Assembly: GCA_001643675.2 (NCBI GenBank)
Contig: LSRY02000003.1
Location: 1,922,001 to 1,986,000, forward strand
DNA length: 64,000 nt
Source of the DNA: Monocercomonoides exilis PA203
Lineage: Eukaryota > Protista > Preaxostyla
Direction: 5' to 3'
Below, one piece after another: positions 4,781 to 62,951 of this stretch (positions within the stretch are counted from its first letter, which is position 1; each line of letters opens with the position of its first letter). The notes beneath the pieces were generated by a model. That model was not told the origin of the DNA and did no database searches. It worked only from the letters and a program-made list of their open reading frames with translations. The position numbers were made by a program, and so were the translations under genes.

Positions 4781-5462
<682 letters not shown>

Positions 5463-8275: not shown

Positions 8276-11200
8276 AATTTTTTGAATTTTTTTTTCATTT
8301 TCCAATTCGAATTATATATTTTCGATTTTGAATTATTAATTCCGAAATTGAATTAATTTCTTTCGAAATTGAATAATATTATGTGTATTTGATTTCATAA
8401 TATCACTCAAATGAAAAAAGATAATAGATTGTCGTTTTTAAGAAATAATGTGTGTGTGTTCCAGCACTTGAACAATAACAAGAACACTTGACATTTTATT
8501 TTTGAAATGCTCATCCACATTCAATGAAGAAAAAGCTTTTTTAATCTGAAAGCTTTAAGCAATATTTATTCTTCCATGTTTTTGTATTTCGATTGAAAAA
8601 CCTTAAACAAAAAATATTGATAAAAAGATTTAAAAGGATAATGTTTTCGTTTTTGATGTTTCAATCAAAATACTAAATGTTGAACAAAAAGAAGTTTCTG
8701 TTCCTTTCAAGATGGTTATAATAACAAATAATTGAGTGAAATGGATTTTGATTATTTCAGAGTTTCAATGAATTCATCTATAACGTTCGCTTTTTTTGCA
8801 ATTGTGATAAAATGTTATTATGATAATGATTTTTTGGAAAAAAAAAATATTTCTGAAATATCAAAAAACAAAAAACAGAAAAAAAAGGATTTTTTTATAA
8901 ATTACCCTTTTAAGAAAAAATAGTTGAACAAAAGTTATCAAATTTGTAATTTGCACAAAATGAAGAGACATTCTTTAATCAAATACAAAATCTATTCAAA
9001 AAGCAATTATTCATTTTCCTTGAATGGTGATTGTTATACACTGATAGTATAATATCTTTTTTTGATAAACTCAAAAATCACTGTACAATTTTTTTTTCCT
9101 CCAAACGAACACAATGATGGCTATGTGGCAAATGTTAAACACAAAAGTCTAAGATGAGATTTCAGATATTTTTAACTGAAACATTATCTTTCTTACTTTT
9201 TCAGATCCAATTAACGCTGTTGAAATAACTGGTTCTTCGACTTCACAAATGTTCATTATGTGAAAATGAAAAATATCGATTTTCAAGCTGTTTTTGAACA
9301 ATGAATTAACACCTCACTTCTCAAAAAAATTATTTAATTAAAATGAAAAATCATGATTTTATCATCCATCCAATTCTGCTTATTGAAATTATTGTGAATT
9401 AAATTGTTGCTTGACAACGTTCAAAATACTTCAAAAGAAATAAAACCATAAAGAATTATGGTTATTTGCGAGGAGATATGAAATTGCACTGCAGTTTGAA
9501 AATGATTAGGATCACAGCATTAGCTCAAATACTCGCTGCATTCCTCACCATAAATCTCGTTCATGGAGAAGACATCGCAAACAGCATCATCAGAGGCGCT
9601 CACCCAGACAAGGTGGAATATGCGTCGGGAAATCACATCTGTGGTGCTCAGACAAGCCTCGCCCTCATCAACACCTCCTTGTGTGTGACCCATCTCAACC
9701 TCATCCCCCTCGCTGGTTGTCCACTCCTCACTGCCCAACACCACTCCGCTGCCTCCATCTCCTCCTCCACTTGCACCATCCACCCACCTTCCCTCACCAA
9801 CAACCACCACCACCACCACTGCCCCCTCTTCCTCTCTGCCCATGCCTCCATCGCCCTCACAAACTTCTCCCTCATCACCCACCAACCTGCCATCTTCTCC
9901 TTCCCTCTCTTCTCCACCCCAAACAATCTCCTCCCAGATCCCCACTCCCCAATCCCTGCCTCCTTCTCCATCTCCCACTCCTCATTCTCCTCATTCGTCT
10001 CCCTCGTCCAGCCCTTCCTTTTTTCTCCTTCTTCCCTCTCTTCCCCATCCCCTTCTCCATCTCCTTCCCTTTCCCCTTCTCCTTCATCTTTCTCATCCTC
10101 ATCATCTTCTTTTTCTTCCCCTTCCCCTTCCCTTTCCCCTTCCATTTCCTCTTTCTCTTCCCCTTCCCCTCTCCATAACCATCACCAATCCCATCCCCAC
10201 CTCCAAATCCATCTCAATCTCCATCTCTCAAACACCCTCTTCTCCAACATCTCATCTCCCCAATCCCCTCTATCACTTCCATCCCTTCATTCACACTCAT
10301 TCAATCCTTTCATCTCAACCACCTCTTCCTCTTCTTCCACTTCCACCTCCACCAACACCAACTCCAATTCAATCCCCTCCTTCTCCCTTCACTCATCTCT
10401 CTCCATCCACTCAACCATCTTCAAACACACCCACAACCCCATCGATGGAGTCATTCTCCCCAACCTCAACAGCCCATCCACTTCTCTCTCTGCCTTCAAT
10501 GCCTCTTTCCTTCACCAAACACGTTCTTCATCAAATGCTGCTGTTGTACATGTTGGAACTGAATCTCAAAGAGTGAAACTTGGAAGATTGATTTCATTCG
10601 ATCAAAACAGTCATCGCTTCGAGTGGTGCGAATGGAATAATTCAAACAGTGGAAATGAATATGGCGGTGCACTTTATGTTAATTGTGTGGATGCAAATCT
10701 CACAATCACTTCTTGTTCTTTCAACAAATGCTCGACAACGAAGGAAGGATCAGCGTTGTTTTGTAATGCTTTGTTAAAAATTGATATTTCAAAATCTAAT
10801 TTCACAAGTTGTTCGGCTTTGCATGGAGGTGCTGTGGAAATATGGAACCCTCAATCATCTTCTGCTTATTCATTCTCGGAAAACAGAGTGGAAAGTTGTT
10901 CAATAACAAATTGGTGTGGAACTGGTTGGTATTTTCAAGTGTATAACATGACCTCAACTTGTCAATTCCAATTTACCAAATGTAAGTGTATTTCAAATTC
11001 TGGTGGTAATTCTGCTGGTTCTCTAACATTCAATGATCCTCCAACCAATAAGCCAAACCAATTTTTAGTTAATGAGTGCCAATTTATAAACAACAAATTG
11101 ACAAGTTCAACTTCAACTCTTGGTGGTGCAGGTATTTATTTGGATGTCACTTATTCCTGGATGAATAGTATGAAATTCATAACTTTCTGCTTCTTCGATG

Positions 11201-13620
11201 GCAACACTGCCACTAATGGCAGAGGAAATGATGTATTCTTCAGTGGTAATGCCATCACTCAATCTCCGTTTGAAAATTGTGGTTCAACAACTCCATCAAA
11301 AAGAGTGCATAATAACGGAACTGCTTACAACATTGAGAAAAATGACAGGTTTTGACTTTTCTTTTCATATTCTTCCAATGGAATTCCTTTCTCACTATCT
11401 TCTCTTTTCCATCCATTTTTTGCTTCTTCTATTTTCTTCTCTTTCGTTAATATATTTTTTGATTTCTTTTGTACCTCATCGTCTTCCCTTGTTTCTTGTT
11501 TTGAATCTCGAACGTCTTCCACTGCTCATCCAAATCCATTTCTTCATATTTCTTTCTCTTTCGCCTCGTCTTTCATTCTTCTTTTTCTCATTTTAATTTA
11601 CGAAAATTTCCTTTAGATGAATAATTTCTTCTTTATCTTCATTTCATTCATTATCTCTGACGATGAAACAGATCATGAAGAAATTCGATCAGATGAAGTG
11701 AATGACGATAAAGAAGAAGAAGCGTGTGAAATGTTGTTGATATATTTGAAGAAGAAGAAGAAGGTGATGAATGCGTTGAATGAGATGATTAATTGTTGAA
11801 AATTGAGAAGATGAGTGACAATTTACATCAACGGAGAAATTCAATCGAATTTTCTTCTTCAGGTTTTTGTCTTCTTCTTGCAAACAATAGCCTCTGAACA
11901 TTTTTCACTTTCAGCTCAATCTCTTTCTCTCTTTCCAACAAAAAATATGAAAAATTGAGCGTTCCCTTTTTCATTCCATGCCTTCTTCTTTCACTTCCCT
12001 TATTTCACTCAAATTATCTTTCCTCAAAAATAATTATTTGTCAAAGCCCAATGCCAAGCATCTTCGAAATATCTCGCATTTCATCTGTCCGTCTTTATTT
12101 TTCCTTCCCCACATTTCTCTTTCTTCTTCAAAGCCACCTAATCCTTCTTTCTTTCAGCATTCTTAAAACAAAATAATAATTACTTCAAAAAATAACAATA
12201 TCAAACCTTCAGAACCAATGCTCAAGTCAATAACTCTATTTTATCCAATTGGCAACTGTTTCCCCTCAATAAAAATTCATAATTCCTTCCTTTTTCGAAT
12301 GTTTCATCATCTGATTCGCAAATCGTCCTTTCCATCAGTTGTTTCTCCATCAAGTGCATCGATTTCTGGTCCTTCTGAAAATGTGAAATTTATATATTTG
12401 GCTCAAATTCCACTCTCATCATTGAAAAATGTCCTGTTTTTCGTCTGAAAATATCATCTCCAATTCCCTCCCCAATCCCTTCACCCTGGGCACTTTCCAT
12501 ATGAATTCGCTCTCCCAACTCGATGTTCACCCTGCATAACGAGATATAAACATTTCGTTCATTTTCATTCATTTCCACCTCCCGCCCTGAAAGAAACACA
12601 AAAACATTCAACAGATAAATATTCATATAAATAAAAATAAATAAAGACCAAACTGCTCTTCGACTGTATTTTGCCAAACAGCTTCATTTCCACAGCCATC
12701 ATCATTCAAAAAATCAATCTCTTCATTTCAGTCTCAGAATGGTTGAATACAGCATTGCATCCTTCTCCACAAAATACATTGAATATCTCACTGGAGGGCC
12801 TTTTCAGCCCGTACACATTGTGGTGGATGTGCAGAGGTGTTTTTTTCTGTTTTTGGCATGATCATCTCCTTTAATAATATTCTCAACCACCAAAAGAAAT
12901 ATATCTCGTTTATCTTGTCAATAACATGAACATGAGGGATATGGGGCAGAGAAGAGATGGAAGAGGATTATTTGTGGCAGGGGGTGGGAGTTGAATGTTT
13001 TTTTGGAATGTTAATATTTCGAGAGAGATTTTTGAAAGGAAGAAATTCTGAGACAAAAAGGTGGAGAAGAGCAAGTGGAGATTTGGAGAAGAAAATGTAG
13101 TAAATATATAGAGAAGTGACTGGGGATGATGAAAGAGGACGGATTGTTGATGGGAGAAATGGATTTTGAAAAGAAAGAAAAAAGGGCAAAAGCGAAACAG
13201 AGAAGATGACAATTGTGAAATATTCGATTAGAAGAGGGATATTTTTTGAGAGGAGAAGATTTTATGGAAGAGGATGGGAAAGATGAAGAAAAGGAAGGGA
13301 TTGATATTTTTCAATGATTTTGTGAGCTGAATGGAAGAGGAAAAACGGAAAGGAATGGAAATTGAGAAAAATCAACATTTTCTATTTTTGAGGGGAAAAG
13401 AGGGGAAATCGCAAAAAGAAATTCAACTGATTTTGAAAAAATACAGCAAGATTGATTTCCACAATCTGTTAGTCACGCATTTTGTGATTGAATTTTTCAA
13501 ACCAATCTGAAGTTAATACATCAAATGAGACATTTTGGCCAATCAACAACATCACGCAAATTATTCTCAACTTCATAAATATCGTTCGACTGTTTTCGCA
13601 TTTCTCAACTGCATCTTCTT
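8276..13620 (+). repeat. Left arm of a large inverted duplication (partner ~26000-31529)
   Basis: 8276-~10310 is nearly identical to the reverse complement of ~29490-31529. ~12160-13310 is nearly identical to the reverse complement of ~26310-27470. The variable domain and short tail between these blocks differ. Confidence 0.93.
9478..11355 (+). CDS. Cassette A: secreted/surface beta-helix (GGA-repeat, Pmp/pectin-lyase-like) protein with signal peptide and Ser/Pro/His-rich linker; no TM anchor
   Basis: Signal-like MIRITALAQILAAFLTINLVHG (ATG at 9478 or 9502). GGAL/FxxC/FxxN repeats. KFITFCFF motif shared with the 45133 gene. Stops soon after the domain. Confidence 0.8.
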   Translation: MKLHCSLKMIRITALAQILAAFLTINLVHGEDIANSIIRGAHPDKVEYASGNHICGAQTSLALINTSLCVTHLNLIPLAGCPLLTAQHHSAASISSSTCTIHPPSLTNNHHHHHCPLFLSAHASIALTNFSLITHQPAIFSFPLFSTPNNLLPDPHSPIPASFSISHSSFSSFVSLVQPFLFSPSSLSSPSPSPSPSLSPSPSSFSSSSSSFSSPSPSLSPSISSFSSPSPLHNHHQSHPHLQIHLNLHLSNTLFSNISSPQSPLSLPSLHSHSFNPFISTTSSSSSTSTSTNTNSNSIPSFSLHSSLSIHSTIFKHTHNPIDGVILPNLNSPSTSLSAFNASFLHQTRSSSNAAVVHVGTESQRVKLGRLISFDQNSHRFEWCEWNNSNSGNEYGGALYVNCVDANLTITSCSFNKCSTTKEGSALFCNALLKIDISKSNFTSCSALHGGAVEIWNPQSSSAYSFSENRVESCSITNWCGTGWYFQVYNMTSTCQFQFTKCKCISNSGGNSAGSLTFNDPPTNKPNQFLVNECQFINNKLTSSTSTLGGAGIYLDVTYSWMNSMKFITFCFFDGNTATNGRGNDVFFSGNAITQSPFENCGSTTPSKRVHNNGTAYNIEKNDRF

Positions 13621-14670
13621 TTTCGTCTTCTTCGTCTTCTTCTTTTTCGTCTTCTTCAGATAATCCCCTTTCATTCAATCAACCGTCTTCCTCATTTTTC
13701 AGTTTGCAAACACAAAATTCGCCTTCTCACAATTCACTTGCTTATTCAGCGACAAGCACGCCTGTTATGAACCGCATAGCCAAAAACACACAAAATCTTC
13801 TTCAGTCAAATTTTGCTTCTTCTTCTTTTACTTCAACATCTTCCTCTTCTTCATCTCTTTCGTCTCCTTCTTCAATTTCAACTTCATTCTTCCTCATTCA
13901 TGCACACATTTGTACGGCATCGATCTTCATTTCAACAATTGTGTTCATCCTTTTCTTCTTCAACGCCTTCTTCGATGAACGAAATAAAAATATTCTTATT
14001 TCCATTTCATTCAACTCCCATCGAATTCAGGGCCAAGCCTTGTCTTTCATTCTTTCTCAGAAAGACGAAAGAAATATTTATTTTGACATAGAATTTCAAC
14101 CAACCTAACACAGCAACGGAAATGATTCTAAATCCTATCGAGAAAAGCCGACCACAAAGCGCACAATAAAAAATAGAAATTGAATCTGAATTATTAATTT
14201 GGAAGTTGAAAGAATTCTCAGAAAACAGAAAGAACAGGACAGGATAGGATGTTTGGGGCGAATGATTATGAGGATGACCTTCGACAAATTTCACAACGTC
14301 ATGTGCCTTCGATGGAATGAGAGGATGATTAAACGATGAGAACATAATTTATTAGAAAACAAATAATCGAAGGATAATTCTGTGAAATAAGTGCATCTGC
14401 AGCGGACAAAAAAGGTGAAGTGAAAATAGCAAAAGAAATTGAAAGCTTTGAAGAGCTTGCTGATATTATCGAAAGATATCTTTTTGAAGAAAGAAAAACG
14501 AAAGATTCCATTTAGCGATGTGCTTTATTTTCATACGATGAAGAAGACAAATTAGATGAGGAAATTTCAAAGAAATAAAGAAGAAATAATATAGCCTGTG
14601 CTGATTTTGGGCTCAATGAAAGATATGTGATGATATGTGCTTCAGTTGAAAAAAGAAATTCATTATTCTC
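11640..14670 (-). pseudogene. Degenerate 3' module shared between convergent cassettes (continuation of cassette B)
   Basis: Recurs at ~25000-27980 (inverted) and ~56700-59900. Fragments such as HNVY...IFNVFCG...NDDGC resemble the RRNVVC...WILDLGC C-terminal part of the 45133 protein. Contains GT..AG intron-like segments and many stops. Confidence 0.55.
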
Positions 14671-16056
14671 TTAAAATGGAAAGAATAATAAAGAAATTAT
14701 AAAAAGGTTATTGTTATCAATGATTTTTGCATCAGCTGCGCTGAAGGTGAGTGTTTGAAGAGGAACAAATGTTGAGGAAAGAAGAGTGAGGGAGGCGTCT
14801 TGGGTATCTGTCATGCGAACAAGAGCATGTTCTATTGTTTTGCATGGACCGAGTTGCGTGATTCCGCAGAGATCGGTGTTTGTCCCATTATTTGACACGA
14901 TTTTGAATGTTGTTATGAGAGGAAGCCATCTGTTGAACTCAACATCATCAGCTGTTCCTGCATTCCACACTCTATTTGATTCTGTTGTTGACCCGCACTG
15001 ATTGAATGGGGATTTCGTTATGGCATTGCCATTGAAGAACACGTCATTTCCTCTTCCATTTTTGGCAGAGTTTCCATCGAAAAAACAGAATGTGATGAAT
15101 CTTATTTCATTCATCCAGGAATAAGTTGAATAGAAAAAAATGGCAGCGCCTCCATATGTAGAAGAAGCAGTTAATTTATTGTTTATAAATTGGCAATCAT
15201 CAACCAAAAACTGAGTTGATTTATTGCCTGGGGGATTTGAAAATGTGAGAGAGCCAGCAGAATCGCCACCAGAATTTGAGATGCACTTGCATTTGGAAAA
15301 CAGGAATTGAGCATCTGAGGGCATGTAATAGAGGGAAAAGTACCAACCAGTTCCACACCAATCTGTTATTGAGCAACTTTCCACTCTGTTTTCTGAGAAT
15401 GTCCAAACAGAATTAGGTTGATTGCAATACAAATAAGCAGCTCCTCCATGAGCAGCTGAACAACTCGTGAAATTGGATTTTGTGATATCAATTTTTAACA
15501 AACTATCGCAATATAACGCTCCACCATGATTTGTATTTGAACAATTATCGAATGAGCAAGAAGTGATTGTGAGATTTGCATTAGTGCAGTTAACTTTAAG
15601 TGCACCTCCATGATCACTACCACCAGTTGAATCATTCCATTCACACCACTCAAAGCGATGACTGTTCACATCAAACGAAGTTAATCTTCCAGGTTTCGCT
15701 CTTTGAGATTCAGTTCCAACATGTACAACAGCAGCATTTGATGAAGAACGTGTTTGGTGAAGGAAAGAGGCATTGAAGGCAGAGAGAGAAGTGGATGGGC
15801 TGTTGAGGTTTGGGAGAATGGCTCCATCGATGGGGTTGTGGGTGTGGAGGAAGAGGGATGAGTGGATGGAAAGGGATGAGTGAAGGGAGAATGAGGGAAT
15901 TGAATTGATGTTGGTGTTGGTGGAAGTGGAAGAAGTGGATAAGGTGGTTGAGATAAAAGGATTGAGTGAATGTGAAGAAAGAGATGGAAGTGATAGAGGG
16001 GATTGGGGAGAGGAGCTGTTTGAGAAGAGGGTGTTTGATGAATGAAAAAAGCCATA
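14671..16056 (-). pseudogene. Cassette B: leaderless beta-helix variable domain plus start of stalk
   Basis: Open frame from an upstream in-frame TAA (~16058) with no in-frame ATG or signal peptide before the domain. Same framework as A. Continues WLPLITTFKIVSNNG..CKTIEHAL. Confidence 0.78.
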
Positions 16057-16919: not shown

Positions 16920-18397
16920 GGCAAATTCGCGTTATATCGGACATTGAGAAATTGATTTTAATGCAAATAGAAATGTTTATTATTCATATGTATTAATGTT
17001 TTGGATATTAAAAAAGCGCGGAAGTTTGTCAAAATCGAGTTTTTAATTTTTCCTTTTTCAAAAAAAAAATGATTGTGGGTCAATGTAAAAAATCGAAAAA
17101 TAGAAAAATTATCAATTGTTATTATTCATCCACCCATTCCGATGCATCAGCACCATCAGATAATCCCAAGCTGTCTGTTGATTCATCTTTTTTCTCATTG
17201 GAAGATTCTGAAGAATCAAAATCATCAATATCTGGAATATTTTCATCTGTTAATTCGTCGTCTTCTTCTTTATCCTGTTCTTCCAAAATTTGTTCTTCGA
17301 TTTCCTCTTCCTTTCTGTAAACGATCATGTGTACAACATCTTGAAAAGCGAGTTGTTTTGTATTTTTCACCATCCAAAATGCTAGATAATCCCACAAAAA
17401 CCGTTCTCTAACACCATGTTTTGGGAAAAACCCCCGCAAATGCGACCACATACCCTCTATCGTGTTTGTACAAGCTCCGCTCAGAGGATCAACAAAATTT
17501 CTCTTATGACAGACTGTTTTATGAATGTATCCGAATGCTTCCAGTGATGAATAGGCTTTCCATTCATCACTCATGATAGTTGTGCCTGGCAAAATGTGCT
17601 GTCTGATTATCGGAAGAAGAGTTTTTGCAGATCTGTCAGGAACTATATTGATGAATTTCTTCTTGATTTCATTTTCATTTTCTGTCCTTTCTATCGCACC
17701 GAAAATCCAAATTTGCTTTTTCTTTCTCCCCCTTTTATATTTTCTTCGTCTCCATACGCACTCATCAATCTCTACAATAACCCCCTCACCTCCCAGTTTG
17801 ATTGGATTGTTGTTGATAAAATCCATGCAAGCACATCTTAACACACAGCTCCAATAGCCAACAACTGAATCATGCAAATCAAGCATTTTTTGGATGTTTG
17901 ATTGCGAAATCCCAAGCCAAAGAAACAAGATGATGAGTAAAAACTTATTAATTCCACACTTTGAATTCTCCAAATTAGTTCCTTTGTACACTGATTTTTT
18001 TGTTGCACATTTTCTACATGTCCAATACCTATAATTTGCTCCTTCTTTCACTAAAACCTTCTTTTTCTTATGAATTCTGCAATCTGGACTTTTATCTTCC
18101 AGAATGTGATGAAAAAACCAATCCCATGCAGTTTCTTCTTTTATAAATGTACAAATTTTACTGAATACAGAATATTTCTTTTCCCTTGGATATGCCATTT
18201 TTGATCATTGTTTGTTTTTCAATAACCCTAAATAGGAACATACCCATAAATTGTGATATTTTCGAAACATTTTTTTATTTTTGACAAAACGTTTTCCGCG
18301 CTTTAAAACTATTTTTAAAATGAATTAGATACATATTTAAGTAAATCAGACACAAAAAAACTGAAATTTTCGTTGTCCGATATAACGCGATTATGCC
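16920..18397 (-). mobile_element. Merlin DNA transposon, copy 2, apparently intact
   Basis: 24-bp TIRs matching 22/24 (GGCAAATTCGCGTTATATCGGACA / GGCATAATCGCGTTATATCGGACA). Perfect TSD CTTTTATT (16912-16919 and 18398-18405). Confidence 0.95.
17122..18198 (-). CDS. Merlin/ISXO2-like (DDE_Tnp_IS1595) transposase, 358 aa
   Basis: Uninterrupted ORF. CRIH..CRKC, VEIDE, RRKYKRGR, WIFGAIER, SDEWKAY, HKTVCHKRNFVDP, TNTIEGMW. Confidence 0.95.
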   Translation of the reverse strand: MAYPREKKYSVFSKICTFIKEETAWDWFFHHILEDKSPDCRIHKKKKVLVKEGANYRYWTCRKCATKKSVYKGTNLENSKCGINKFLLIILFLWLGISQSNIQKMLDLHDSVVGYWSCVLRCACMDFINNNPIKLGGEGVIVEIDECVWRRRKYKRGRKKKQIWIFGAIERTENENEIKKKFINIVPDRSAKTLLPIIRQHILPGTTIMSDEWKAYSSLEAFGYIHKTVCHKRNFVDPLSGACTNTIEGMWSHLRGFFPKHGVRERFLWDYLAFWMVKNTKQLAFQDVVHMIVYRKEEEIEEQILEEQDKEEDDELTDENIPDIDDFDSSESSNEKKDESTDSLGLSDGADASEWVDE

Positions 18398-18686: not shown

Positions 18687-20230
18687 ATGAAATTTTCAGT
18701 GAAAAAGAAAGCTGAAGCTACGCAGAAGCGGCCGAAGGAAGCAATGTCTTCATTTCATTGCAGAAAATTTAGTTCAAGATTGGAAAGGATTGCACATATT
18801 GTTAATGACAATGTCGTCATGCCTGTCGATGGGGTTTAATACGGTGCAATCAGCAAAAATTCTTTGGAGCACGCTGTCAAAGCAAAAAAAAAAAAAGGCA
18901 GACCTGTTGCAAAAGTTGGTCATCCACCTATTATTAGCCGCGAAAAAGAAAAGTTATTCTTTGAAGAAGTCACAATTGAATCTCGATCTGGGACAAGCCT
19001 CACATTACGAAAAGCTAGCGATCTGGTTTGCAAATAATATTTGATTTGAATACTTATTTGCATATAGATGGAAAATATGTTTGATGATAGTGAAGAAGAA
19101 GGAGAAAAAGAAGAAAAGAAGAAAAAGACAGTCACTTTGAAGGCAGTTCACGCCTTCATAAAGCGCCATCCGGAATTGAAGTCATCGTTTCCAAAGCAAG
19201 TTGATATAAACAGACTTGGAGCATCTTGCTAGAAAGTCCTAAAGCCGTGGTACACCGAATTACAAGCATTACACAATGCAAATAAATATCCCGAGGAATT
19301 AATCTTCAACATCGATAAATCTTCGCTTCACGTTCCAACTTCTACAAGTGGTGTTGTTGTTCATCAAGCAGATGAACAAAGTTGGTTCAAAAAAGAGTAC
19401 CGAATGGATGCTGAATGCCACTCTCGTTGCTAGAAAAGCTGCTGATGGTTTCTCGCTTCCGTCTGTCGTGCTGTGCCCGAGCGCAAATCTTCCGAAAGAA
19501 CAGACAACACTGTTGACGCCGTCGCTTGACATTTGGCCAAACACAAATGGCTAGAGGCTGAAAGCATCATTCAAAAAATATTTTATTACAGTTCTTTCAC
19601 CAGTTATCATTGACAGAAGAAAGCGAATACTGAAAGAATCTCATCGTTGCCTTTTTCTCCTATATTCATACTCATCGCGCGCAGATCCAACTGTATGGAG
19701 ACATTTAAAGGAAATGGAAATTGATATCATCACCTTCGTTCCACACACAACACACATATCGCAACCGCTGGACAGAGGCGTATTTGCAGTGTTGAAGTCG
19801 GAGCTTTCAAACAGTTACAGCTCCCCTTCATCCACCTCCTCATTTTCAAAAAGAACAGCAGTTACAGATGTATTACAACAAGCCCTTCACACCGCATTCT
19901 CCCCTTCAGTCATCAAAAAATCCTTCATCAACAGCGGAGTCCTCAGCAATGGATCTGGATCTGTGCTAATGAAATTTCCTCAGTCTTCTCAATACTCCTT
20001 TCCATCTCATTCACATTGTTTCGACTTTTTTGGAAAAGAAATAAAAAAAGAAAAACCGTTTGATGAACGGGATGAATGAAATGAAAAACACAAGATGATA
20101 ATTTAAGAAATTGAAGAAAAAAAAAGGAAATAGAAAAAGAAGAATTGCATTTGGAGAAAAAAGTGAAAAGGATATTCAGAAAAATTAAGAATGATGACGA
20201 TGAAACAAGTGATGAATTTGACACCTTTGA
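18687..20230 (+). pseudogene. pogo/CENP-B-like (DDE_1) transposase pseudogene 1, with intron 19026-19067
   Basis: AFIKRHPELK (CENP-B-type HTH end), LIFNID, FVPHTTHISQPLDRGVFAVLK. Stops and frameshifts. Confidence 0.85.
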
Positions 20231-20373
20231 ACGTGAAAATGGAAAAAGAAAAGTGAGAAGAGTTATTGATTTGAGTTTTGTTTTTTTTTTTTGATGTGTT
20301 TTTTACTTTTTTTCATTTCAAAAAAATTTTTATTAGCAAATAAAAATAAGATTATAATCAATATTTTATTTGA

Positions 20374-25852: not shown

Positions 25853-25995
25853 GAAGAAGAAGAAGAAGAAGAAGAAGAAGAAGAAGAAGAAGAAGAAGAA
25901 GAAGAAGAAGAAGAAGAAGAAGAAGAAGCAGGAGGAGGAGGAGAAGGAGAAGAAGGAGAAGGTGAAGAAGAAGGAGAAGAAGAAGAAGAAGAAGA
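25853..25995 (+). repeat. (GAA)n microsatellite / purine tract
   Basis: About 25 perfect GAA units, then a GGA/GAA mix. Confidence 0.95.
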
Positions 25996-25999
25996 CGAA

Positions 26000-50237: not shown

Positions 50238-50633
50238 CAGATATCGCACAAAATACCGGACATCGCACAAAATACCGGACAAGATCGATATCACGATAAC
50301 TGCAGGAGGAATAATTCTGATAATTTTCCTCAAAACACATCTCGTCAATACAAACTCATTTGAATAACAAGACTTCACTTCAGCTTTATTTGTGCTCAGA
50401 AAAAATTAATTTTTGAAATCTCGGAGAAATAGAATTTTGAGTTTCTCCGAGATTTCAAAAATTAATTTTTTCTGAGCACAAATAAAGCTGAAGTGAAGTC
50501 TTGTTATTCAAATGAGTTTGTATTGACGAGATGTGTTTTGAGGAAAATTATCAGAATTATTCCTCCTGCAGTTATCGTGATATCGATCTTGTCCGGTATT
50601 TTGTGCGATGTCCGGTATTTTGTGCGATATCTG
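50238..50633. mobile_element. Perfect foldback MITE: 192-bp arms, 12-nt loop, TA(TA) flanks
   Basis: 50238-50429 is the reverse complement of 50442-50633, with no mismatch found by eye. TA|CAG ends are Tc1/mariner-like. ATCGCACAAAATACCGGAC occurs twice at each end. Confidence 0.92.
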
Positions 50634-51302
50634 TATATGATGATGCTCAACACAGAAAAAAATAAAAATTTATTAATTAATTAATAAAATTTGGTTCGTA
50701 TTTTTAATTTTTGAAAATTTATCATTAAAACGCATTTTTCACTTGCGAAATCAATTTTTTCATTAATACACATTATTTAGACTTTTTTTAACATAATTTT
50801 GAAAAATAAAAAATTGAAAATTTTGATCAAAAAATCGATATTACATTGAAAAAAGCACACATGATAATATAAAATGTGATTATTTATATTTAGCCCTGTG
50901 ATTATATGCGATTGAAAATGAATGAAAAAAAAAAAAACATCGGTGCATTGAAAATTTTGACTAAAACCGATGTTGATTTTATAAGATGAGAATATATCCC
51001 GTTAAGACTGTTTTCCACTTTTATATTGTTGATTTTTCTTTTTTGAAGAAAATAAAGTTGCAATTTTTTTATATTTTTCTTTCGAATATTGAAAGACAAA
51101 AGATTAGTGACATTGAATCGTAAAAGATAACGCTCTCAAGGCAAAAGTTAAATTTTGTTGTTTCAATAGAAATAATTGTTGATAAAAGAAAATTTTATTC
51201 ATATAAATTTCAAACAAAGAAAATCAAACACATTGTTGAAATGTTTGTGAAGCTTTTCCATTTCTATTCTTTTAATGCAATTCCAAAAAAACAAAATCAT
51301 TC

Positions 51303-51930
51303 ATTTCAAATGAATAATTTGTTTTGTTTGCAAGCATGGACATTCCGTTTTTATCAAAATGAAAACGACTTATTTAATTGGTCAGTGCAAACACAATTTC
51401 AAACATCAATCAATATTGCAGATGAAGTGTTTTTATGAATTTCAAAGATAATTTTGCAAAATGATAAACAGCAAAATTCTTTCATCAAAAGTCATAAATG
51501 AAATGATTTTTCTGGAAGAAATAATAAAGTCATTCTTCAATTCTCTTTCACCAGTTGTATTCTAATGAAGTTGTTCTTTCACAAATAAATGAAATTAAAA
51601 AAAAATTCAAAATTTGGAAATACTGAACAAAAAAGAGTCCAAACTGAAAAACGAATATTAATTATCATTTGAACATTTTTCGATTTCTTGTTGAATTTTG
51701 CGCTTTCAGTTTCCCCAGAAATATAAAATTTTTGTAAATATGATTTTTTCGCTTTTTGATGAAAACGCGAAAATGAAACAAAATGAAATTTTAATTATTG
51801 ATTCAAAAATTCATTTCTATAATTTTTTTTTATTTTCATTTTCATTGCAGATAACACAAGGCAATTTCTTTTCATCAAAAAGAATAATTTGAAGGAAAAA
51901 TGAAACAATTTGAGCAATTTCATTTTCTTA
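51303..51930 (+). repeat. Left arm of the second inverted cluster (upstream region of E; partner ~62980-63608)
   Basis: ~550 bp essentially identical to the reverse complement of 63060-63608, with diverged homology further out. Confidence 0.92.
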
Positions 51931-53339
51931 AATATTGCAAACTGCAAAAGCTCTTTCAACAAAATCAATCCATTTCAAAGCATCTTTTTCATTCTTCGAT
52001 TTCCTTCCGTTTCCATCTCCCACTTCTATTTCTTCCTTCTCACTCACTCAATTCATTCATCTCAACCACCTCTTCCTCTTCTTCCACTTCCACTTTCACC
52101 AACATCAACATCAATTTAATCCCCTCTTTCTCCTTTCATTCATCTCTTTCCATCCACTCAACCATCTTCATCCACACCCACAACCCCATCGATGGCGCCA
52201 TTCTCCCCAACCTCAACAGCCCATCCACTTCTCTCTCTGCCTTCAACACCTCTTTTCTCAGCCAAACACAATCTTCATCAAATGATCTTGAAAAATATAT
52301 TGGATCCGAAACTCAAAAATTGAAATTAGAAAGAATGTACTCATTCAACCTGAATAGCCATTGTTTTGAGTGGTGTGAATGGAAAGATTCAAATGGTGGA
52401 ACTGGCCATGGGGGTGCGCTTTATGTTGAATGCACAAATGCAAATCTCACAATCACTTCTTGTTCGTTCAATAATTGTTCAATAGATGGATATTATGGTG
52501 GAGCGTTATACAGTTGCGGTTTGCAAAATGAGAATATTGCAAAATCAAATTTCACAAACTGTTCGGCACAAAATGGAGGAGCAATTTGCATTGATGGAAG
52601 AGAATCATCTTCCATTTATTCATTTTCTGATAACAGAGTGGAAAGTTGTTCAATAACAAGTACAATTGGAACTGGATGGTATTTTTTTATTGGTGATTTT
52701 TCTTCAAACGGTCAATTTTTGTTCACCAAATGCAAGTGCATCTCAAATTCTGGTGGTGATTCTGCTGGTTCACTCACATTTAATGATCCACCAGCTAACA
52801 AACCAAACCAGTTTTCAATTAATGAATGTCAGTTCATCAATAATAAATTAACAAGTTCATCAACATCATGGGGAGGTGCTGCAATTTTCTTCTATTCAAC
52901 TTTTTCCTGGATGAATGGAATGAAATTCATCACATTCTGTTTCTTCGATGGCAACACTGCCACAAATGGCAGGGGAAACGATGTGTTCTTCAGTGGTAAT
53001 TCCATCACTCAATCTCCATTCCAGCAATGTGGCTCAACGACTCCATCAAAAAGAGTGTGGAATCAAGGAACAGCTGAAAACGCTGAATATAATGGCTGGC
53101 TTCCAATCATCAATCAGAACAAAATCGTTTCTAACAGCGGAACTGATGTCGATGCCTGTGGCAAAACACAGCAAAGCCCATGTGCCACTGTGGAGTATGC
53201 TCTCGGATGCGTTGCTCCCTTCAGCGATGCATCCCTCTCTCTTCTCGTCTCCACTTTCACTCCCACAAACACTCTCACTTTCAGCGCTGTCGATACTAAA
53301 TTCACTGTATGCTATACTATTTTTCCAATTCTCAAATAA
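51900..53339 (+). CDS. Cassette E: beta-helix variable domain, no signal peptide, long-type tail start
   Basis: Same framework as A-D. Continues WLPIINQNKIVSNSG..CATVEYAL, then decays. Confidence 0.75.
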   Translation: MKQFEQFHFLKYCKLQKLFQQNQSISKHLFHSSISFRFHLPLLFLPSHSLNSFISTTSSSSSTSTFTNININLIPSFSFHSSLSIHSTIFIHTHNPIDGAILPNLNSPSTSLSAFNTSFLSQTQSSSNDLEKYIGSETQKLKLERMYSFNLNSHCFEWCEWKDSNGGTGHGGALYVECTNANLTITSCSFNNCSIDGYYGGALYSCGLQNENIAKSNFTNCSAQNGGAICIDGRESSSIYSFSDNRVESCSITSTIGTGWYFFIGDFSSNGQFLFTKCKCISNSGGDSAGSLTFNDPPANKPNQFSINECQFINNKLTSSSTSWGGAAIFFYSTFSWMNGMKFITFCFFDGNTATNGRGNDVFFSGNSITQSPFQQCGSTTPSKRVWNQGTAENAEYNGWLPIINQNKIVSNSGTDVDACGKTQQSPCATVEYALGCVAPFSDASLSLLVSTFTPTNTLTFSAVDTKFTVCYTIFPILK

Positions 53340-55306
53340 AATTCTTCTAATTCTGATGGCTTTTCATTTCACTTTGCATTCATGAATTTTCATCTTCTTT
53401 TCAACAGGAGCACATATCACCACTTTTCTTTCATTGAGCAAAATCAGCACAGATTATATTATTTCTTCTTTATTTCTTCGACATTTTCCATTTGATTTGG
53501 TTTTTCTATCGAATAAAAATAAAGCTCGTTGCTAAATGGAATCATCCGTTTTCCTTTCTTCAAAAATAATTTCTTCAAGCACATTCGAAGGTTTTCCACA
53601 AATTATAATTTCCTCACATTTCCTATTCAATTGTCAATCTGTTATTCGTCCCATTTTTTAATAGAATTATCCTTCGATTATTGATTTTCCTAAAACAACT
53701 GCTTTCTCTCCTCATTTCATCTTCTGTGATATATTGAAGGGGCATGACGTTGTGAAATCTGCCGAAGACCATTTTGGAACCCATCCATTTCACAAAAGGA
53801 TTTCTTCAATTCTTTTTCTTTTTCATCTGTGTCTCCTTCATTCACTGAAAAAAGGGGAAAAGCATCCTCCTTTTCTGATTTCGCTCCGTCTGATCGGCTT
53901 TTCATGGAAAATTTAGTGCCTCTTCTATTATCATATAACTTCAGCTGATATTCTGTGTAAAATAGATATTTCTTTTTGTGCCTCTGAATTCACATCGATG
54001 ATGAGGTCTGGCGTTGAACTCGGGGGGAGTTGAATGAATTTGAATAAACATTATTTTTACCGATCATTGAAGAAGGCGTTGAAGAATACGATGAAAATGA
54101 AATGAATGAATTTGTTCAAATTGCCTTTTTTTCATCACGAAAATCATGAATGAAACATGAAATGAAGAAATATTTGGTGAACGGTCGTTGAGAGGAAGAA
54201 AAGTGAATGAAGCAATTTTCGGTGAAATTTTCTTGTGCTTCCAATTGAACAGTTTAAATGCATCATAAGGTCGATGATCTGATTCAACTCCAAGTGAGTT
54301 ATTATGGCATTAAAGAAGCAGAAGATAATGGTGAAGATGGCATAGCTGATGGGAAAGAATAAAACGTGGAAGATATTATAGAATTTGAAGAAGATGAAGA
54401 AGATGAGAAGATTGAGAGATGAGCAATCAGTCAAACAACTTTTCTGAAGAAGATGATGAAAATGACTTGTATGATGTTGTCAGTTGGTTAAACGTCACAT
54501 TTGATAAGTTGATTTCAGAAGGAATATAAAACCCCAATCACAAATTATATTGGCCAATTCGAATTTATTTGTCAATGAAAACTGATATCTTCAGTTCATT
54601 GGCAAACTTTGTGTGGTTTCATTGTCTTTCTCTCCAAAACCAAAAAATAATGATGTTCGTCCATTGGCTCTGAAAAAATATGAACGATATAAATATCTGT
54701 TGAAGATAATTGAAAGAAGAAGAAGAAGAAGGTGAAAAAGAAGAAGATAAAGAAGAAGAAGGTGAAGAAGGTGTAGAAGATGCTGAAGAAGAAGATTGTT
54801 TTGCTTGTTTTGATGTTGATGATGATGAATGAGATGACAAAGACGACGAAGACGAAGAAAATGAAAAAGAAGGAGAAGGAGTGTTGTGTGTTGAATATCT
54901 CTGTCGGAGAAATGGAAGCTTGGGGATTGCATTTCTCCGAATGAGAATGTTCTCATAAGCTTATTTTGGAATTCGTGGGAAGACGATGATGGGTTGAAGG
55001 AACTAAAAGGCAAGGAAAAGAGACAGACATTGAAGGAAGAACACGAAGTTGCAAAAGTAGTTGAAGGAGTCGAAGGAGTTGAAAAAGAAATGATAAGAAA
55101 AAGATGAGGAGGAGGAGGAAGAAGAAAATGAAAAAGAAGAAGAAGACGAAGAAGAAGACGAGGAAGAGGAAAAAGAAGAATTGGAAGAAGACGGTGATAA
55201 TGAATAAATTGATGAGTTGATTGAAGGTTGAGATACGCGAAAATGAACGATAACAAATAAAAACAAAATGTTTCTATGAAATCATTTTTTCTTCATCCAT
55301 TTTTGT

Positions 55307-56413
55307 GTGTTCTTCTTGCAAACAAAATCCTTCAACTCATCCCTCTTCATCCACTCATCCCTTTCCATCCATACTCAGAACCCTATCAATGGTGCCATTC
55401 TCCCTTCTCTCAACAACCCATTCACTTCTCTCTCTGCATTCAACACTTCCTTTCTCCACCAAACACGATCTTCACCAAATGCTGCTGTTGTTCATGTAGG
55501 AACTGAATCTCAAAGAAAAACACTAAAAAGACTGACTGCTTTTGATCTAAACAGCCATCGCTTTGAGTGGTGCGAATGGAATGATTCAACTGGTGGAGAA
55601 AGTTATGGTGGCGCGCTTTCTGTTTCTTGTGTAAATGCAAATCTCACAATCACTTCCTGTTCATTCAACAATTGTTCGATCACAGGCGATTATGCTGGTG
55701 GAGCGTTATACAGTTACTGTTTGCAAAATGAGAATATTTCAAAATCCAATTTTTCAAACTGTTCTGCTCCTCATGGAGGAGCAAATTGTATTGGTGGGTC
55801 ACAAACAAATTCTGTTTATTCATTCTCAGATAACAGAGTTGAAAGTTGTTCAATATCTGGCTGGTGTGGAACTGGTTGGTATTTCTATATTGGTGATTTT
55901 TCTTCAAACGGTCAATTCTTATTCACCAAATGCAAGTGCATCGCAAATTCAGGTGGCGATTCTGCTGGTTCACTCACATTTAATTATCCTCCAGGCAACA
56001 AACCAAGTCAGTTTTTGGTTAATGATTGCCAATTCATAAACAACAAATTGACAAGTTCGTCATCTTCATGGGGAGGAGCTGCTCTATGTTGCACAGCAAC
56101 TTATTCCTGGATGAATGGAGTAAAATTCATCACATTCTGTTTCTTCGATGGCAACACTGCCACAAATGGCAGAGGAAATGATGTGTTCTTCAATGGCAGC
56201 AGCATAACCCAATCTCCATTCGAGAATTGCGGTTCAACAACCTTAACGAAAAGAGTTTGGAATTGTGGAACAGTTGAAAACACAGAGTATGTTGGCAGGT
56301 TTTGGCTTTTCCTTCAAAATTCTCCAATGAAATGTCTTTCTAACTTCCGTCTCTTATTTTTCCTTTCTCTATTTTCTCCTCTCCTTGCATTCTTTCTTTT
56401 CTCTCAAATTTGA
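55307..56413 (+). pseudogene. Cassette F: leaderless variable domain, short-type tail
   Basis: Non-ATG start, framework conserved, tail like A and D. Confidence 0.75.
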
Positions 56414-56699
56414 TAGTTTATTTCTTGAATCTTGTCATTCACCCTTGTTTGTTATATCACTTCTCAAAATTACCCTCCATTTATCCAAATACTTTTCTTC
56501 CCAAATTCAACATTCAACTCGAATCTCCTCTTCGAAACATCTTCTCTCTTTAACCCAAAAATCTCTTCAACCCTCTCAATCTCATTTCCATCAAGCATGA
56601 ATCCGAGATCAAGAACTTCTTTCTCTTTCTTTTTCTTATTTTTATTTGTAATTTTTTCCTTCATTAATATATTTCCTTGTTTCCTTTTCATTTCTCTCT

Positions 56700-59600
56700 T
56701 AATCTCTGATGATGAAACAGATCATGAAGAAATTCAAAATAGATGATGTGAATGAAGAAGATGAAGAAGTAGCTGTGTGAAATGTTGTTGATGTTTTTGA
56801 AGAAGAGGAAGATGATGATAATGAATAAATGACATGAAATGTTTAATTGTTGAAAATTGAGAAGATGAGTGTCAATAAATATCAACGGAGAAATTCATTG
56901 AAATTCTCTTCTTCTGGATTTTGTCTTCTTCTGGCAAATAATATCCTTTGAATTCATAGCAATTTCAATTTGATTCTTTCTCTCTTTCCATCTGAAAATA
57001 GGAAAGATTGAGCGATCCCTTTTTCATTCCATCTTTTCTCCTTTAACTTCCCTTCTTTCACAAAAAATCATCTTTCCTTAAAAATAATTCTTCGCCAAAG
57101 GTTAATGCCAGGCATCTTCGAAATATCTTGAATTTCATCTGTCTGTCTGTATTTTTCCTTCCCAACTTTTCTTTTTCTTCAAAGCCACCTAATCCCTCAT
57201 CCTTTCAGCATTCTTAAAACAAAATAATAATCACTTCAAAAAAAGAAACAGCAAACCTTCAGAACCAATGCTCAAGTCAATAACTATATTTTATTCAGTT
57301 GGCAACTGTTTTCTTCGATTCAATTTCATTATTCCTTCCGTTTTCAAGTGTTTCATCATCTGATTCCCCAACCATCCTTTCCATCAGTTGTTTCTCCATC
57401 AAATGCAGCGATTTCTTGCTCTTCTGAAAAATGTGAAATTCATGCATTTTGCTCAAATTCCATTTTCATCATTGAAAAATGTCCTGTTTTTCGTCTGATA
57501 ATATCATCTCCAATTCCCTCCCCAATCCCTTCATCCTGGGCACTTTCCATATGAATTTGCTGGCTCAACTCCATAGCCACCCTGCACAACGAGATATAAA
57601 CATTTCATTCATTTTCATTCTTTTCCACTTCCTGCCCTGAAAGAAACACAAAAAACATTCAACAGATAAATATTCATATAAATAAAATAAATAAAGACCA
57701 AACTGCCCTTCGACTGTTTTTTGCCAAACAGCTTCATTTCCACAGCCATCATCATTCACAAAATCAATCTCTTCATTTCAGCCTCAGAATGGTCAAATTG
57801 CAGCACTGAATGCATCTCCACAAAATACATTGAATATCTCACTGGAGGGTCTTCTCAGCCAGTACACATTGTGTTGCCTGTCAGGATGTGTTTTTTCTGT
57901 TTTTGGCATGATCATCTCCTTTAATAATATTCTCAACCACCAAAAGAAGTATTTGATGTCTATCTCACCAACACAATGCATAGGAGAGATAAGGCGCATA
58001 CAAGTGATGGAAGAATATTTTTTGTGGCAGGAGGTGGGAGTTGGGTATTTTATGGAATGTTAACATTTCGAGAGGGGTTTTTGAATGAAAGAAAATCTGA
58101 GACAAAGGGGTGTGGAAGAGCAGGTGGAGATTCGGAGAAGATAATATAGTAAATACATAGAGAAGTGGTTGGAGATGATGAAGAAGGTGATTATTGTTGA
58201 TGGGAGAAATGGATTTTGAAAAAAAGGAAAAGAGGGCAAAAGCGGGAAAGAAGAGGGAAATTGAGAAATGTTCATATGAAAAGGGGGTAACTTTTATGAG
58301 AGGAGAATGTTTTATGGAAGAGGCCGAGAAAGATGAAGAAAAGGAGGGGATCGATATTTTCTGATGATTTTGGGGGTTGAATGGAAGAAGGGAATGGAAA
58401 GGAAAGGAAATTGAGAAATATTATCATTTTCTATTTTTGAGAGGAATGGAGAGGAAATTGCAAAAAGAAATTAAATTGCCTTTGGAAAAATACGCAATGT
58501 TGATTTCCATAATCTATTCTTCACAAATATTGTGATTGAATTTTTCAAACCAATCTGAAATTTATACAGCAAGCGAGCCATTTTGGCCAATCAACAACAT
58601 CACGCAAATTATTCTCAACATCATAAATATCGTTCGACTGATTTCACAATTCTCAACCCTTTTTTCTTTTTCCTCTTCTTCTTCTTCGCCTTCTTCCTCA
58701 TTAACAGACTTTTCAAACTGTGCAGCATCTTCTTCAACGGAATCAACGATTGATGAGCACACGCCAATCAACTTTTTCCCAGAGTCGTTTTTTTCAACTC
58801 CTTCGCATCTCAAAGAAACTCCTTTGTCTTCTTCCACTCCATCCACACCTCCTTCAATCATCAACTGAACAACTTTTGTTTCTCCTTCTCCTTCTCCTTC
58901 ACCTTCTCCTTCTTCTTCTTCACCTTCTTCTTCATCTTCATATTCCTCTCAAAATTTTCTGCTTCATCTTTGTCAATCTGTTTCTTCCTGCTGGGTCAGA
59001 GCATCGACTTTCTGATGCATTTCAGTTGTGCAATCAGCAGCTCTGCAAAATTGAACGAAAAATAGCTTCATTCACTTTTCTTCTTCTCAGCGTCCATTCA
59101 CCACATACTCCATCATTTCATGTTTCATTCATGATTCCTACGAAGAAAAAAAGGCAATTTGAACAAATTCATTCATTTCATTTAAATCAACTTTTTCTTC
59201 AACCTCTTCTTCGATGAACGAATTTAAAATATTCCTATTTCCATTTCATTCATATTCCTGTTGAATTCATCAAGAGGCATTAAAATCTGCTCAAATAGGA
59301 AACGCAAAAGAAATGTTCATTCTGACATAGAATTTCAGCCGGACATAACACGGTAGTGAAATGGGATATTTTGATGCAGAATAGTCTGTCATTATGCATG
59401 CAACAGAAAATAGAGATTGCCTCTGACTTTTTTTCATTTGGAAGTTGAAAGAATTCACCGAAAACTGAAAGAACAGGACAGGATAGGATGTTTGGAGCGA
59501 ATGATTATGAGGATGACCTTCGACAACTTTCACAACGTCATGTGCCTTCAATGGAACGAGAGGATGATTAAACGAGGAGAACATAATTTATTTGAAAACA

Positions 59601-59982: not shown

Positions 59983-61185
59983 TTATGTATTTGGGGCACG
60001 GAATGTGAGTGTTTGAAGAGGAACAAATATTGAGGTGAGGAGGGTGAGAGAGGCGTCTTGGAGGAGGGAAATGAATCCGGTGAGGGCATACTCGATGGTG
60101 GCACATGGGGTCTGTTGGGGCCTGCCACAGATATCAGCATCAGTTCCATTGCTGGCAACGATTTTGTTCTGGGCAACGAGGGGGAGCCAGCCATTATATT
60201 CAGCATTGTCAGCTGTGTTGCTGTTCCACACTCTTTGTGTTGGAGTTGTTGAGCCACATTGCTGGAATGGTGATAGGGTTATGCTACTTCCATTAAAGAA
60301 CACGTCATTTCCTCTGCCATTTGTTGCGGAATTGCCATCGAAGAAACAGAATGTGATGAATTTCATTCCATTCATCCAGGAATATGTGTCTCTGAAAAAT
60401 ATTGCAGCACCTCCCCATGATGTTGATGAACTTGTCAATTTGTTATTTATAAACTGACAATCATTAACCAAAAACTGACTTGGTTTGTTGCCTGGAGGAT
60501 AATTAAATGTTAGAGAGCCAGCAGAATCTTTTCCAGAATTTGAAATACACTTGCATTTGGAAAATAAGAATTGGCAAGTTGAAGTCATATTATTGAGCCA
60601 GAAATACCAACCCGTTCCACACCAATCAGTTATTGAACAATTTTCCACTCTGTTTTCTGAGAAGGACCAATCGGAAGTGGATTGTGGATAAGCAATGCAA
60701 GTTGCTCCTCCATGTGCAGCTGTGCAACTTGTGAAATTGGATTTTATAATGTCAATTTTCAGCAGGTTATCGCAACGTATTGCTCCACCACTGTATCCAC
60801 CTGTGGTTGAACAATTGTTGAAGGAACACGATGTGATTGTGAGATTGGCATTTGTGCAACTAACTTTAAGTGCGCCTCCATGATCACTTCCTCCATTTGA
60901 ATCATTCCATTCACACCATTCGAAGCGATGGCTATTAACATCAAAAGAAGTCAATCTTCCAGGTGATTTTCTATCAGTTTCATTTCCAATATACACCTTT
61001 GCAGCATTTGGTGAAGAGCGTGTTTGATGAAGGAAAGAAGCATTGAAGGCAGAGAGAGAAGTGGATGGGTTGTTGAGGTTGGGGAGGATGGCTCCATCAA
61101 TGGGGTTGTGGGTGTGGATGAAAATGATTGAGTTTGAGGATATTTTTTGCCGGAAGAACACGCAAAAATAAAAGAAGAAAACCAT
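59983..61185 (-). CDS. Cassette G: variable domain, long-type tail start, no true leader
   Basis: Framework conserved. WLPLVAQNKIV..CGRPQQTPCATIEYALTGFISLLQDASLTLL is shared with C. Confidence 0.75.
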   Translation of the reverse strand: MVFFFYFCVFFRQKISSNSIIFIHTHNPIDGAILPNLNNPSTSLSAFNASFLHQTRSSPNAAKVYIGNETDRKSPGRLTSFDVNSHRFEWCEWNDSNGGSDHGGALKVSCTNANLTITSCSFNNCSTTGGYSGGAIRCDNLLKIDIIKSNFTSCTAAHGGATCIAYPQSTSDWSFSENRVENCSITDWCGTGWYFWLNNMTSTCQFLFSKCKCISNSGKDSAGSLTFNYPPGNKPSQFLVNDCQFINNKLTSSSTSWGGAAIFFRDTYSWMNGMKFITFCFFDGNSATNGRGNDVFFNGSSITLSPFQQCGSTTPTQRVWNSNTADNAEYNGWLPLVAQNKIVASNGTDADICGRPQQTPCATIEYALTGFISLLQDASLTLLTSIFVPLQTLTFRAPNT

Positions 61186-61622
61186 AAAAAACGATTTTAG
61201 CGAAACTTTCTGTTCTTAATTGTTATCATTTGTCTTTATCATTTCCAGCGTGAAAATTTTCATCGATTCATTGCATGTTCTTCAAACTTCTCAAAAACAT
61301 ATCATCCAACTTCTTCATCATCCACTTCATCAGATAAATTTCTTCATGATCTGTTTCATCATCAGAGATCATGAAAGAAATGATGAAGAAACTAAGAAAT
61401 TTATTTATCAATGAAATATCCAGAAATAAGAATTAGATGAAAAAGTATGAAAGAAGAGCCGAAGTTGAGAGTAATTGAAGGGACTGCATTGAGAGGGGAT
61501 TCGGAAAGGAAATGGAATTGAGAAGATGGAAGAGATATTTTTGGAAGAAAGAGGAGATCTGGATGGAAGTTGAATTTGCGAAGAGAAGGAAACAGCAACT
61601 AATTCAGAGAAAAATATTTGGA

Positions 61623-62951
61623 TTAACAGAGGATAAATTTGAATAAAGAAACAACAACAAGCAAGTCAGGGTGATGCAATTCAGAAGAAATTATAAATAT
61701 GATTAACGAGAGAAAAGAAGGAATATGAGGAGAAGCGGGGGGAAAAAATAATTGGAAAAGAAAATATAGTGAGAAAAACTTTTTGTTAGAAGAATTAGTT
61801 AAGAAAAGATGAGAGAGCCAGCCATTGTACTCGGTATTATCAGCTGTTCCTTGATTCAACACTCTTTTTGTTGGAGTTGTTGAGCCACAATTCTCGAATG
61901 GAGATTGGGTGATGGAATTACCATTGAAGAACACATCGTTTCCTCTGCCATTTGTTGCGGTGTTGCCATCGAAAAAGCAGAATGCGATGAATTTATTTCC
62001 GCTCATCCAGGAATAAGTTGCTGTGCAACACAGCGCAGCACCACCATAGGAAGTTGAAGTTGATGTCAATTTGTTGTTTATGAACTGGCAATCATTAACC
62101 AAAAACTGGTTGGGCTTGGTTCCTGGAGGCCAATGAAATGTGAGAGAACCAGCAGAATCACCACCAGAATTTGAGATGCACTTGCATTTGGAAAACAGGA
62201 ATTGGCCAGATGCAGACAAGTCATTTAGCAAGAAATACCAGCCAGTTCCGCACCAGTTTGTTATTGAACAACTTTCCACTCTGTTTTCTGAGAATGAATA
62301 AACAGAATTTGATTGTGGTAAGCCAACGTAAGCAGCTCCTCCATGAGCAGCTGAACAACTTGTGAAATTGGATTTTGCGATATTCACATTTAACAAATAT
62401 ATACAATATAACGCTCCTCCATGATCGCTTGTTGAACAATTGTTGAATGAGCAAGAAGTGATTGTGAGATTTGCATTCGCGCAATTTACATAAAGTGCAC
62501 CACCACGACTTGACCCACCAGTTGAATCGTTCCATTCACACCATTCAAAGTGATAGCTATTCAAACTAGAAAAGGACAATCTACTTAAATTCTTTCTTTG
62601 AGATTCAGATCCAATATATTCACCAGGATCATTTGATGAAGAACGAGTTTGATGGAGGAAGGATGTGTTGAAGGCAGAGAGGGAAGTGAAGGGGCCATTG
62701 AGGTTGGGGAGGATGGTACCATCGATGGGGTTGTGGGTGTGTTTGAAGATGGTTGAGTGGATGGAGAGGGATGAGTGAAGGGAGAAGGAGGGGATTGTAT
62801 TGATGTTGATGTTGGTGGAAGAGGAAGAAGAGGAAGAAGTGGTTGAGATGAATGAATTGAGTGAGTGTGAGGGAAGAGATGGAAGAGATGGATGGGATTC
62901 GGATGAGGAGATGTTTGAAAAGAGAGTATAGGAAGAGTGAAAAGAGAAATT
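61623..62951 (-). pseudogene. Cassette H: variable domain, short-type tail, in-frame stop upstream
   Basis: Open from an in-frame TAA (~62953) with no ATG before the domain. Framework conserved. Upstream region shared with E. Confidence 0.75.

Follow-up and report, generated by a model that had tools for sequence, protein, structure and literature searches.

Head-only fragments of receptor kinases in Monocercomonoides exilis: a megabase array of mosaic beta-helix cassettes that may serve as a donor reservoir

Cassette archives and the M. exilis locus

Cassette archives are known for pathogen coat antigens and for vertebrate immune receptors. In the chicken Ig pseudo-V genes, Anaplasma msp2 and the agnathan VLRs, the donors are truncated and in frame and the variation is carried on a repeat or beta framework; all three have a defined recipient locus, and in Ig and VLR the process is a dedicated, deaminase-driven one. 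The VSG genes of Trypanosoma brucei form mosaics through segment exchange by homologous recombination. Plant receptor-kinase/NLR clusters and Plasmodium var comprise many full-length receptors that are diversified by distance-dependent ectopic exchange. The locus described here belongs to the gut commensal protist Monocercomonoides exilis, which lacks a mitochondrion. The window that we analysed is a 64,000-nucleotide stretch of contig 25 (G000:C25:1922001-1986000) in an assembly of 82.3 Mb and 101 contigs.

The locus has several features of the Borrelia vls system: a cassette array that holds the variable part only, variable segments set between invariant ones, segmental conversion, and inverted repeats (PMC11499132). 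In vls, sequence moves in one direction only, into a single expression site, at an identity of about 90%, and the cassettes do not vary within a strain (PMC11499132). In M. exilis, by contrast, full genes number in the dozens, the identity is about 78%, cassettes exchange sequence with one another, and the target is a receptor kinase. The T. brucei VSG archive (PMC3553974) likewise belongs to a protist and is a very large collection of incomplete surface-gene copies; however, it consists mostly of broken pseudogenes that feed monoallelic GPI-coat sites, whereas the M. exilis heads are stop-free. The truncated, donor-like segments of M. exilis stay in frame, as they do in chicken Ig pseudo-V, msp2 and VLR. 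Unlike M. exilis, the plant receptor-kinase/NLR clusters and Plasmodium var are not known to have a big separate array of intact head-only fragments. The array works like a silent-cassette archive, yet we do not file it with the vls/VSG kind because at least 24 full-length frames stand where those systems have a single expression site. Our literature search found no published description of a head-cassette system, and the available portions of PMC6759080 and PMC8767320 make no mention of a beta-helix head, of mosaics or of a head-only array.

The eight cassettes and their parent receptors

Self-comparison of the window recovered eight related cassettes, each containing one 267-residue head, and a translated search of the 64-kb window found no decayed ninth cassette. 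They are as follows.

Cassette A, 9478-11355, plus strand, head 10507-11307, 625 aa: signal-peptide-like start, Ser/Pro-rich leader, head and an immediate stop, with neither stalk nor membrane helix
Cassette B, 14671-16056, minus strand, head 14968-15765: leader end, head and about 80 stalk codons, with no Met upstream of the head
Cassette C, 22420-24753, plus strand, head 22579-23379: no leader, head and about 460 stalk codons up to a truncation common to other copies
Cassette D, 28498-30327, minus strand, head 28501-29304: inverted partner of A with A's leader, head, then a TGA replacing a conserved Trp codon right after the head
Cassette E, 51888-53339, plus strand, head 52254-53057: partial leader, head and about 80 stalk codons, annotated as protein P0010 (479 aa)
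Cassette F, 55280-56413, plus strand, head 55451-56257: head alone followed by the A/D-type tail, with no Met upstream of the head
Cassette G, 59983-61215, minus strand, head 60229-61035: head and about 80 stalk codons, in tandem behind H
Cassette H, 61623-62951, minus strand, head 61860-62660: inverted partner of E with leader end and head, and no Met upstream of the head

Each cassette is a truncated copy of the beta-helix head found at the N-terminus of giant single-frame receptors. None of the eight encodes the membrane helix or the kinase; all end 0-460 codons past the head, at one of three recurrent points, namely directly after it (A, D, F, H), after about 80 stalk codons (B, E, G) or after about 460 (C), and the leader is complete in A and D only. 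As the first-pass annotation of this DNA had stated, all eight heads are open. Its further description of the flanks as full of stops applies to the non-coding sequence past the shared truncation points, but not to the A/D leaders or to the roughly 460 codons of C's stalk, which are open. Other arrangements of the coding sequence were considered and rejected: alternative exons or introns behind the flanking stops, as each full gene is one frame and cassettes occur on both strands; Dscam-like mutually exclusive exons, for the mixed strands and the uninterrupted single frames of the full genes; and an alternative genetic code, as reading through TAA/TAG extended no cassette into a full gene.

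The parent is the receptor tyrosine-kinase-like family of M. exilis, which PMC6759080 describes as the largest in the genome and which overlaps the 'unclassified repeats' (PMC6759080, PMC8767320). Full-length members are intronless frames of about 2,600-3,100 aa that run, in order, through a signal peptide, a Ser/Pro-rich leader, the head, a stalk, a membrane helix and a PF07714 kinase; MONOS_12160 is among those that have head, membrane helix and PF07714. Most of the 118 family kinases scored sit in long open frames, and in the genome profile list, which is ranked by score, at least 24 frames of at least 2,000 aa carry the head. An AlphaFold model of the head is an all-beta solenoid (pLDDT 75, with residues 223-267 of low confidence), and VIA-align comparisons with beta-helix tailspike and glycosidase chains gave Z scores of 16.2 (rmsd 4.0, 223 aligned) and 16.1 (rmsd 2.6, 194 aligned). 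The predicted fold is that of a right-handed parallel beta-helix (pectin-lyase-like), and a shared fold does not in itself show any function of the head. Foldseek returned no match to the head model at E<=0.001, and Pfam returned none for A or C. In a profile search of 1.8 billion proteins, the M. exilis proteins P0034, P0040, P0134 and P0136 were among the 13 strongest matches, and the weaker matches reflected only the generic repeat.

The window also holds other sequences. The end of a peptidase S9 gene (PF00326, 1-1062) and a ribosomal protein L18-like frame (about 44460-44932, judged by eye) are ordinary genes scattered through the array. A single-frame surface protein of 1,330 aa (45127-49128, plus strand) combines a signal peptide and a membrane helix with a beta-helix head that is only distantly similar to the cassettes (28%), and has no kinase. 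An open frame of about 1,920 codons at 37777-43551 (plus strand) is of very low complexity, with Ser/Glu/Leu runs, and an A-rich short tandem repeat of about 740 bp occupies 4775-5514. An intact ISXO2-like transposase of 359 aa (17122-18204, minus strand; PF12762, E 8e-21), presumably of Merlin type, is flanked by 17-bp inverted repeats at about 16927 and 18390; an apparent fragment related to it lies at 5727-6194 and has no Pfam match. A MITE-like perfect palindrome with 196-bp arms (50234-50637) has an end similar to the repeat of the ISXO2-like element and a relative at 32123-32499. At least two decayed pieces at 19180-21799 have, by eye, the look of a DDE (pogo-like) transposase.

Mosaic heads in a 1.02-Mb array

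Every identical tract named in the first-pass annotation is present in the sequence, against a background identity of 67-79% between aligned cassettes. These tracts, together with one that C shares with a full-length gene on another contig, are listed here.

A 10462-10573 (plus) = B 15810-15699 (minus), 112 bp, exact
A 10696-10808 (plus) = C 22768-22880 (plus), 113 bp, exact
A 11024-11307 (plus) = C 23096-23379 (plus), 284 bp, with a single mismatch at 11114
C 22963-23039 (plus) = D 28914-28838 (minus), 77 bp, exact
D 29508-29438 (minus) = B 15969-15899 (minus), 71 bp, exact
C about 22880-22950 (plus, approximate) = full-length gene L003 on contig 47 (2,695-aa frame), 71 bp

The peptide matches that had been read between E and F, F and H, and B and E were confirmed, as was that between C and G where the stalk starts. 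The pattern is layered: A equals C on both flanks of a stretch in which C equals the contig 47 gene and then D. Permutation of polymorphic sites gave global significance for 7 of the 28 cassette pairs (p=0.0005 each for A-B, A-C and C-D) and, by the same test, for 32 of 435 pairs among 30 distinct heads. A PHI-like test was also significant (p=0.001), with incompatibility increasing with distance, trees of the three thirds of the head conflict, and the nearest relative along the head switches every 80-160 bp. On the evidence of these alignments, the heads are mosaics of segments that appear to have been exchanged by conversion.

The sequence around the heads is organised in blocks.

8290-10300, plus strand: A/D arm block of upstream DNA and leader, about 100% identical to its D-arm counterpart
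11356-13658, plus strand (A), with 25963-28076 (D) and 56618-58699 (F): non-coding tail common to A, D and F
51300-51850, plus strand: E upstream block, 97-100% identical to the upstream DNA of H in the inverted pair E/H

The earlier statement that A and D are the same over some 2 kb thus holds for about 8290-10300, but merely about 820 bp of this block is coding. A second near-identical stretch of the two (99-100%) lies at about 12200-13000, while they are 71-78% alike in the head and 72-82% in the adjoining tail, the latter also being the range for the A/D/F tail close to the head. A and D are the arms of an inverted duplication, and the block of about 100% identity at 8290-10300 is arm-to-arm homogenisation. 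The non-coding tails past the shared breakpoints are just 54-92% alike, with many gaps, and the truncations are for this reason old. Because mosaicism extends to these tails and to upstream DNA, the head is not the specific target of the exchange.

A profile search of the genome scored 144 heads in a list ranked by score, and 96 of these lie at C25:1.48-2.51 Mb, in an array of 1.02 Mb. Frames below 1,000 aa contain 94 of the 96 array heads against 24 of the 48 heads elsewhere (p=5e-12); elsewhere, 22 of the 48 are in frames of at least 2,000 aa. Two array heads, at 1.79 and 1.90 Mb, belong to full-length frames whose leaders are 92-94% like that of A.

G000:C25:1790973, plus strand: full-length frame of 3,024 aa
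G000:C25:1902553, minus strand: full-length frame of 2,914 aa

The profile census thereby overturned a deep-stalk motif result according to which the array contained no full genes. In an independent motif count, the stalk motif follows the head motif at 5 of 44 array sites and at 34 of 56 sites elsewhere. The survey of the family across the genome thus yielded at least 94 head-only copies within 1.02 Mb, all of them without an internal stop, as compared with stops in 7 of the 24 short heads elsewhere (p=7e-6). Since this list was ordered by score and does not include 11 of the 44 array motif sites, as many as one quarter of the copies in the array could be broken or divergent. Inverted duplications make up the array, which is also rich in transposons; because many of its heads are in inverted pairs, three of them identical among the sampled heads, the number of independent heads is below 94. 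Outside the array, an inverted pair of dispersed heads on contig 16 (L015 and L030) has the same TGA, a stop that was spread by duplication or conversion.

Exchange partners were examined in 30 heads chosen for their similarity to C, three of which are full-length. Identical tracts of at least 60 bp occur in 24% of pairs less than 25 kb apart, 14% of those at 25-100 kb and 2-3% of those beyond; in counts, 10 of 57 pairs within 100 kb and 9 of 378 farther pairs (p=2.5e-5), a roughly sevenfold higher frequency of long shared tracts within 100 kb. The cassettes convert one another, and the exchange is mostly local. Only 1 of 57 pairs between an array head and one of the three full genes has such a tract, which is the background rate. 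When matched in exact 24-bp words to ten remote array heads, full-length heads are covered at 34-49% and array heads at 29-58%, and a variable segment of 9 residues is common to cassette F and the kinase gene MONOS_12160; on these two grounds, all belong to one pool. As judged from these patterns, the exchange looks like general, distance-dependent ectopic conversion and not like a targeted reaction.

Selection, alternative readings and significance

The heads are about 78% identical, with a dS of 0.68 and a framework dN/dS of 0.04. The 45 most variable codons have a dN/dS of 1.07, which is no proof of positive selection because this codon class was picked for its variability. Indels inside the heads are multiples of three, the stalks are 84-93% alike and the best leader matches 86-96%. 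In simulated neutral decay of 5-10%, the chance that 8 of 8 heads stay open was below 1e-5. Private changes, as synonymous to replacement, stood at 15:27 in array heads and 5:27 in dispersed short copies, a difference only at p=0.07. Together with the open frames, the other values point to heads that are not decaying despite the old truncations.

The explanation that we favour, at a probability of roughly 0.5, is that the head array is a donor reservoir maintained by selection and worked by ordinary ectopic gene conversion. Old truncations left head-centred fragments of receptor-kinase genes, and inverted and tandem duplication amplified these into the 1-Mb array on contig 25. Patches of about 50-300 bp would then be copied between heads, most often between neighbours, by a presumed homology-directed ectopic gene conversion; the mosaics and their distance dependence are observed directly. 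Such conversion would recombine variable segments in new ways while the beta-helix frame stays fixed, and the sharing described above suggests that array heads and dispersed full-length genes exchange patches as well. The array would be kept since patches donated to working receptors are selected, and back-flow from working genes may help to keep the cassette frames clean. Because most cassettes cannot make a surface protein, clean frames are explained most simply by selection on donated patches. The likely gain, suggested only by the fold, would be that receptor tips come to bind microbial ligands, for instance glycans, with new specificities. Neither a single expression site nor a dedicated recombinase would be needed. 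The probable role of the cassettes is to store variants of the receptors. Several observations weigh against this explanation: long tracts are concentrated among neighbours, sharing with the three full genes stays at background, exchange reaches non-coding tails and upstream DNA, array copies absent from the scored list may be broken, and the ratios of private changes differ only at p=0.07. Of the conversion-generated repertoire first proposed for this locus, the segmental conversion, the silent-looking cassettes and the surface-receptor target have stood, strengthened by the stop-free head-only copies and by the receptor-kinase nature of the full-length genes.

A possible, if doubtful, alternative is a passive graveyard of functionless fragments that stay open because conversion from some 100 working genes outpaces mutation. 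The local exchange that takes in non-coding DNA would be expected of it, as would a transposon-rich array of inverted duplications with some identical twins, and the low framework dN/dS could have been passed on by the working genes. However, the fragments are centred on the head and are not random portions of an 8-9 kb gene. Dispersed fragments, which have equal access to working genes, carry stops, whereas the 94 array copies are stop-free, and the long incoming tracts derive mostly from neighbours that would on this account be equally non-functional.

Two stronger forms of the archive idea fare less well. It is unlikely that the system is active, with a megabase archive of silent heads rewriting the ligand-binding tips of receptor kinases within clonal populations; if it were, a variable receptor repertoire would exist in a single-celled eukaryote. 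Programmed switching of the vls or VSG type, with a high somatic rate of transfer from the cassettes into one or a few expression-site genes, is in our judgement quite unlikely. The head-only array with its alternation of variable and invariant segments is consistent with it, and the two full-length frames within the array, with leaders so similar to A's, could be example recipients. In contrast, the family has the at least 24 full-length frames and the many kinases in long frames noted above, the cassettes convert each other, whereas silent vls cassettes are invariant within a strain (PMC11499132), and sharing with the three full genes in the sample is not above background. The first-pass annotation had suggested looking for new tract combinations behind the A/D leader. 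A and D are not an expression site, as both end directly after the head with neither stalk nor anchor, and in place of one recipient gene there are dozens of full-length genes.

That the cassettes are working short genes, directly selected for beta-helix heads that they would encode as secreted or decoy proteins, is improbable. A and D do have signal-peptide-like starts and open frames of 610-625 aa, and E is annotated as a protein. However, six of the eight have no signal peptide and three have no upstream Met, and the frames of cassettes that lack a signal peptide run into AT-rich tails. RNA runs contain 35-52% of A's sampled words, a signal that is not specific to A because at least 71% of its words occur in other copies. 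Assembly or polishing chimeras are very improbable: the assembly was made from nanopore reads, which are error-prone, and was polished ten times with Pilon (PMC8767320), but tracts of 70-284 bp are far below the read N50 of 8.9 kb, paralogs about 78% identical do not readily cross-map, the tracts are in frame, layered and common to several contigs, and DNA runs contain 58-79% of A's sampled words (with the same limit of at least 71% of words in other copies).

The array accounts for part of the 'unclassified repeats' of M. exilis. Its target sets it apart from the archives known so far, being the signalling receptor-kinase family of a gut commensal, and the archive is unusually clean and large. 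If the flow were merely passive, the array would be a striking yet ordinary instance of concerted evolution. As a donor reservoir, it would be a directly testable case of selection that keeps donor sequence which is not itself expressed.
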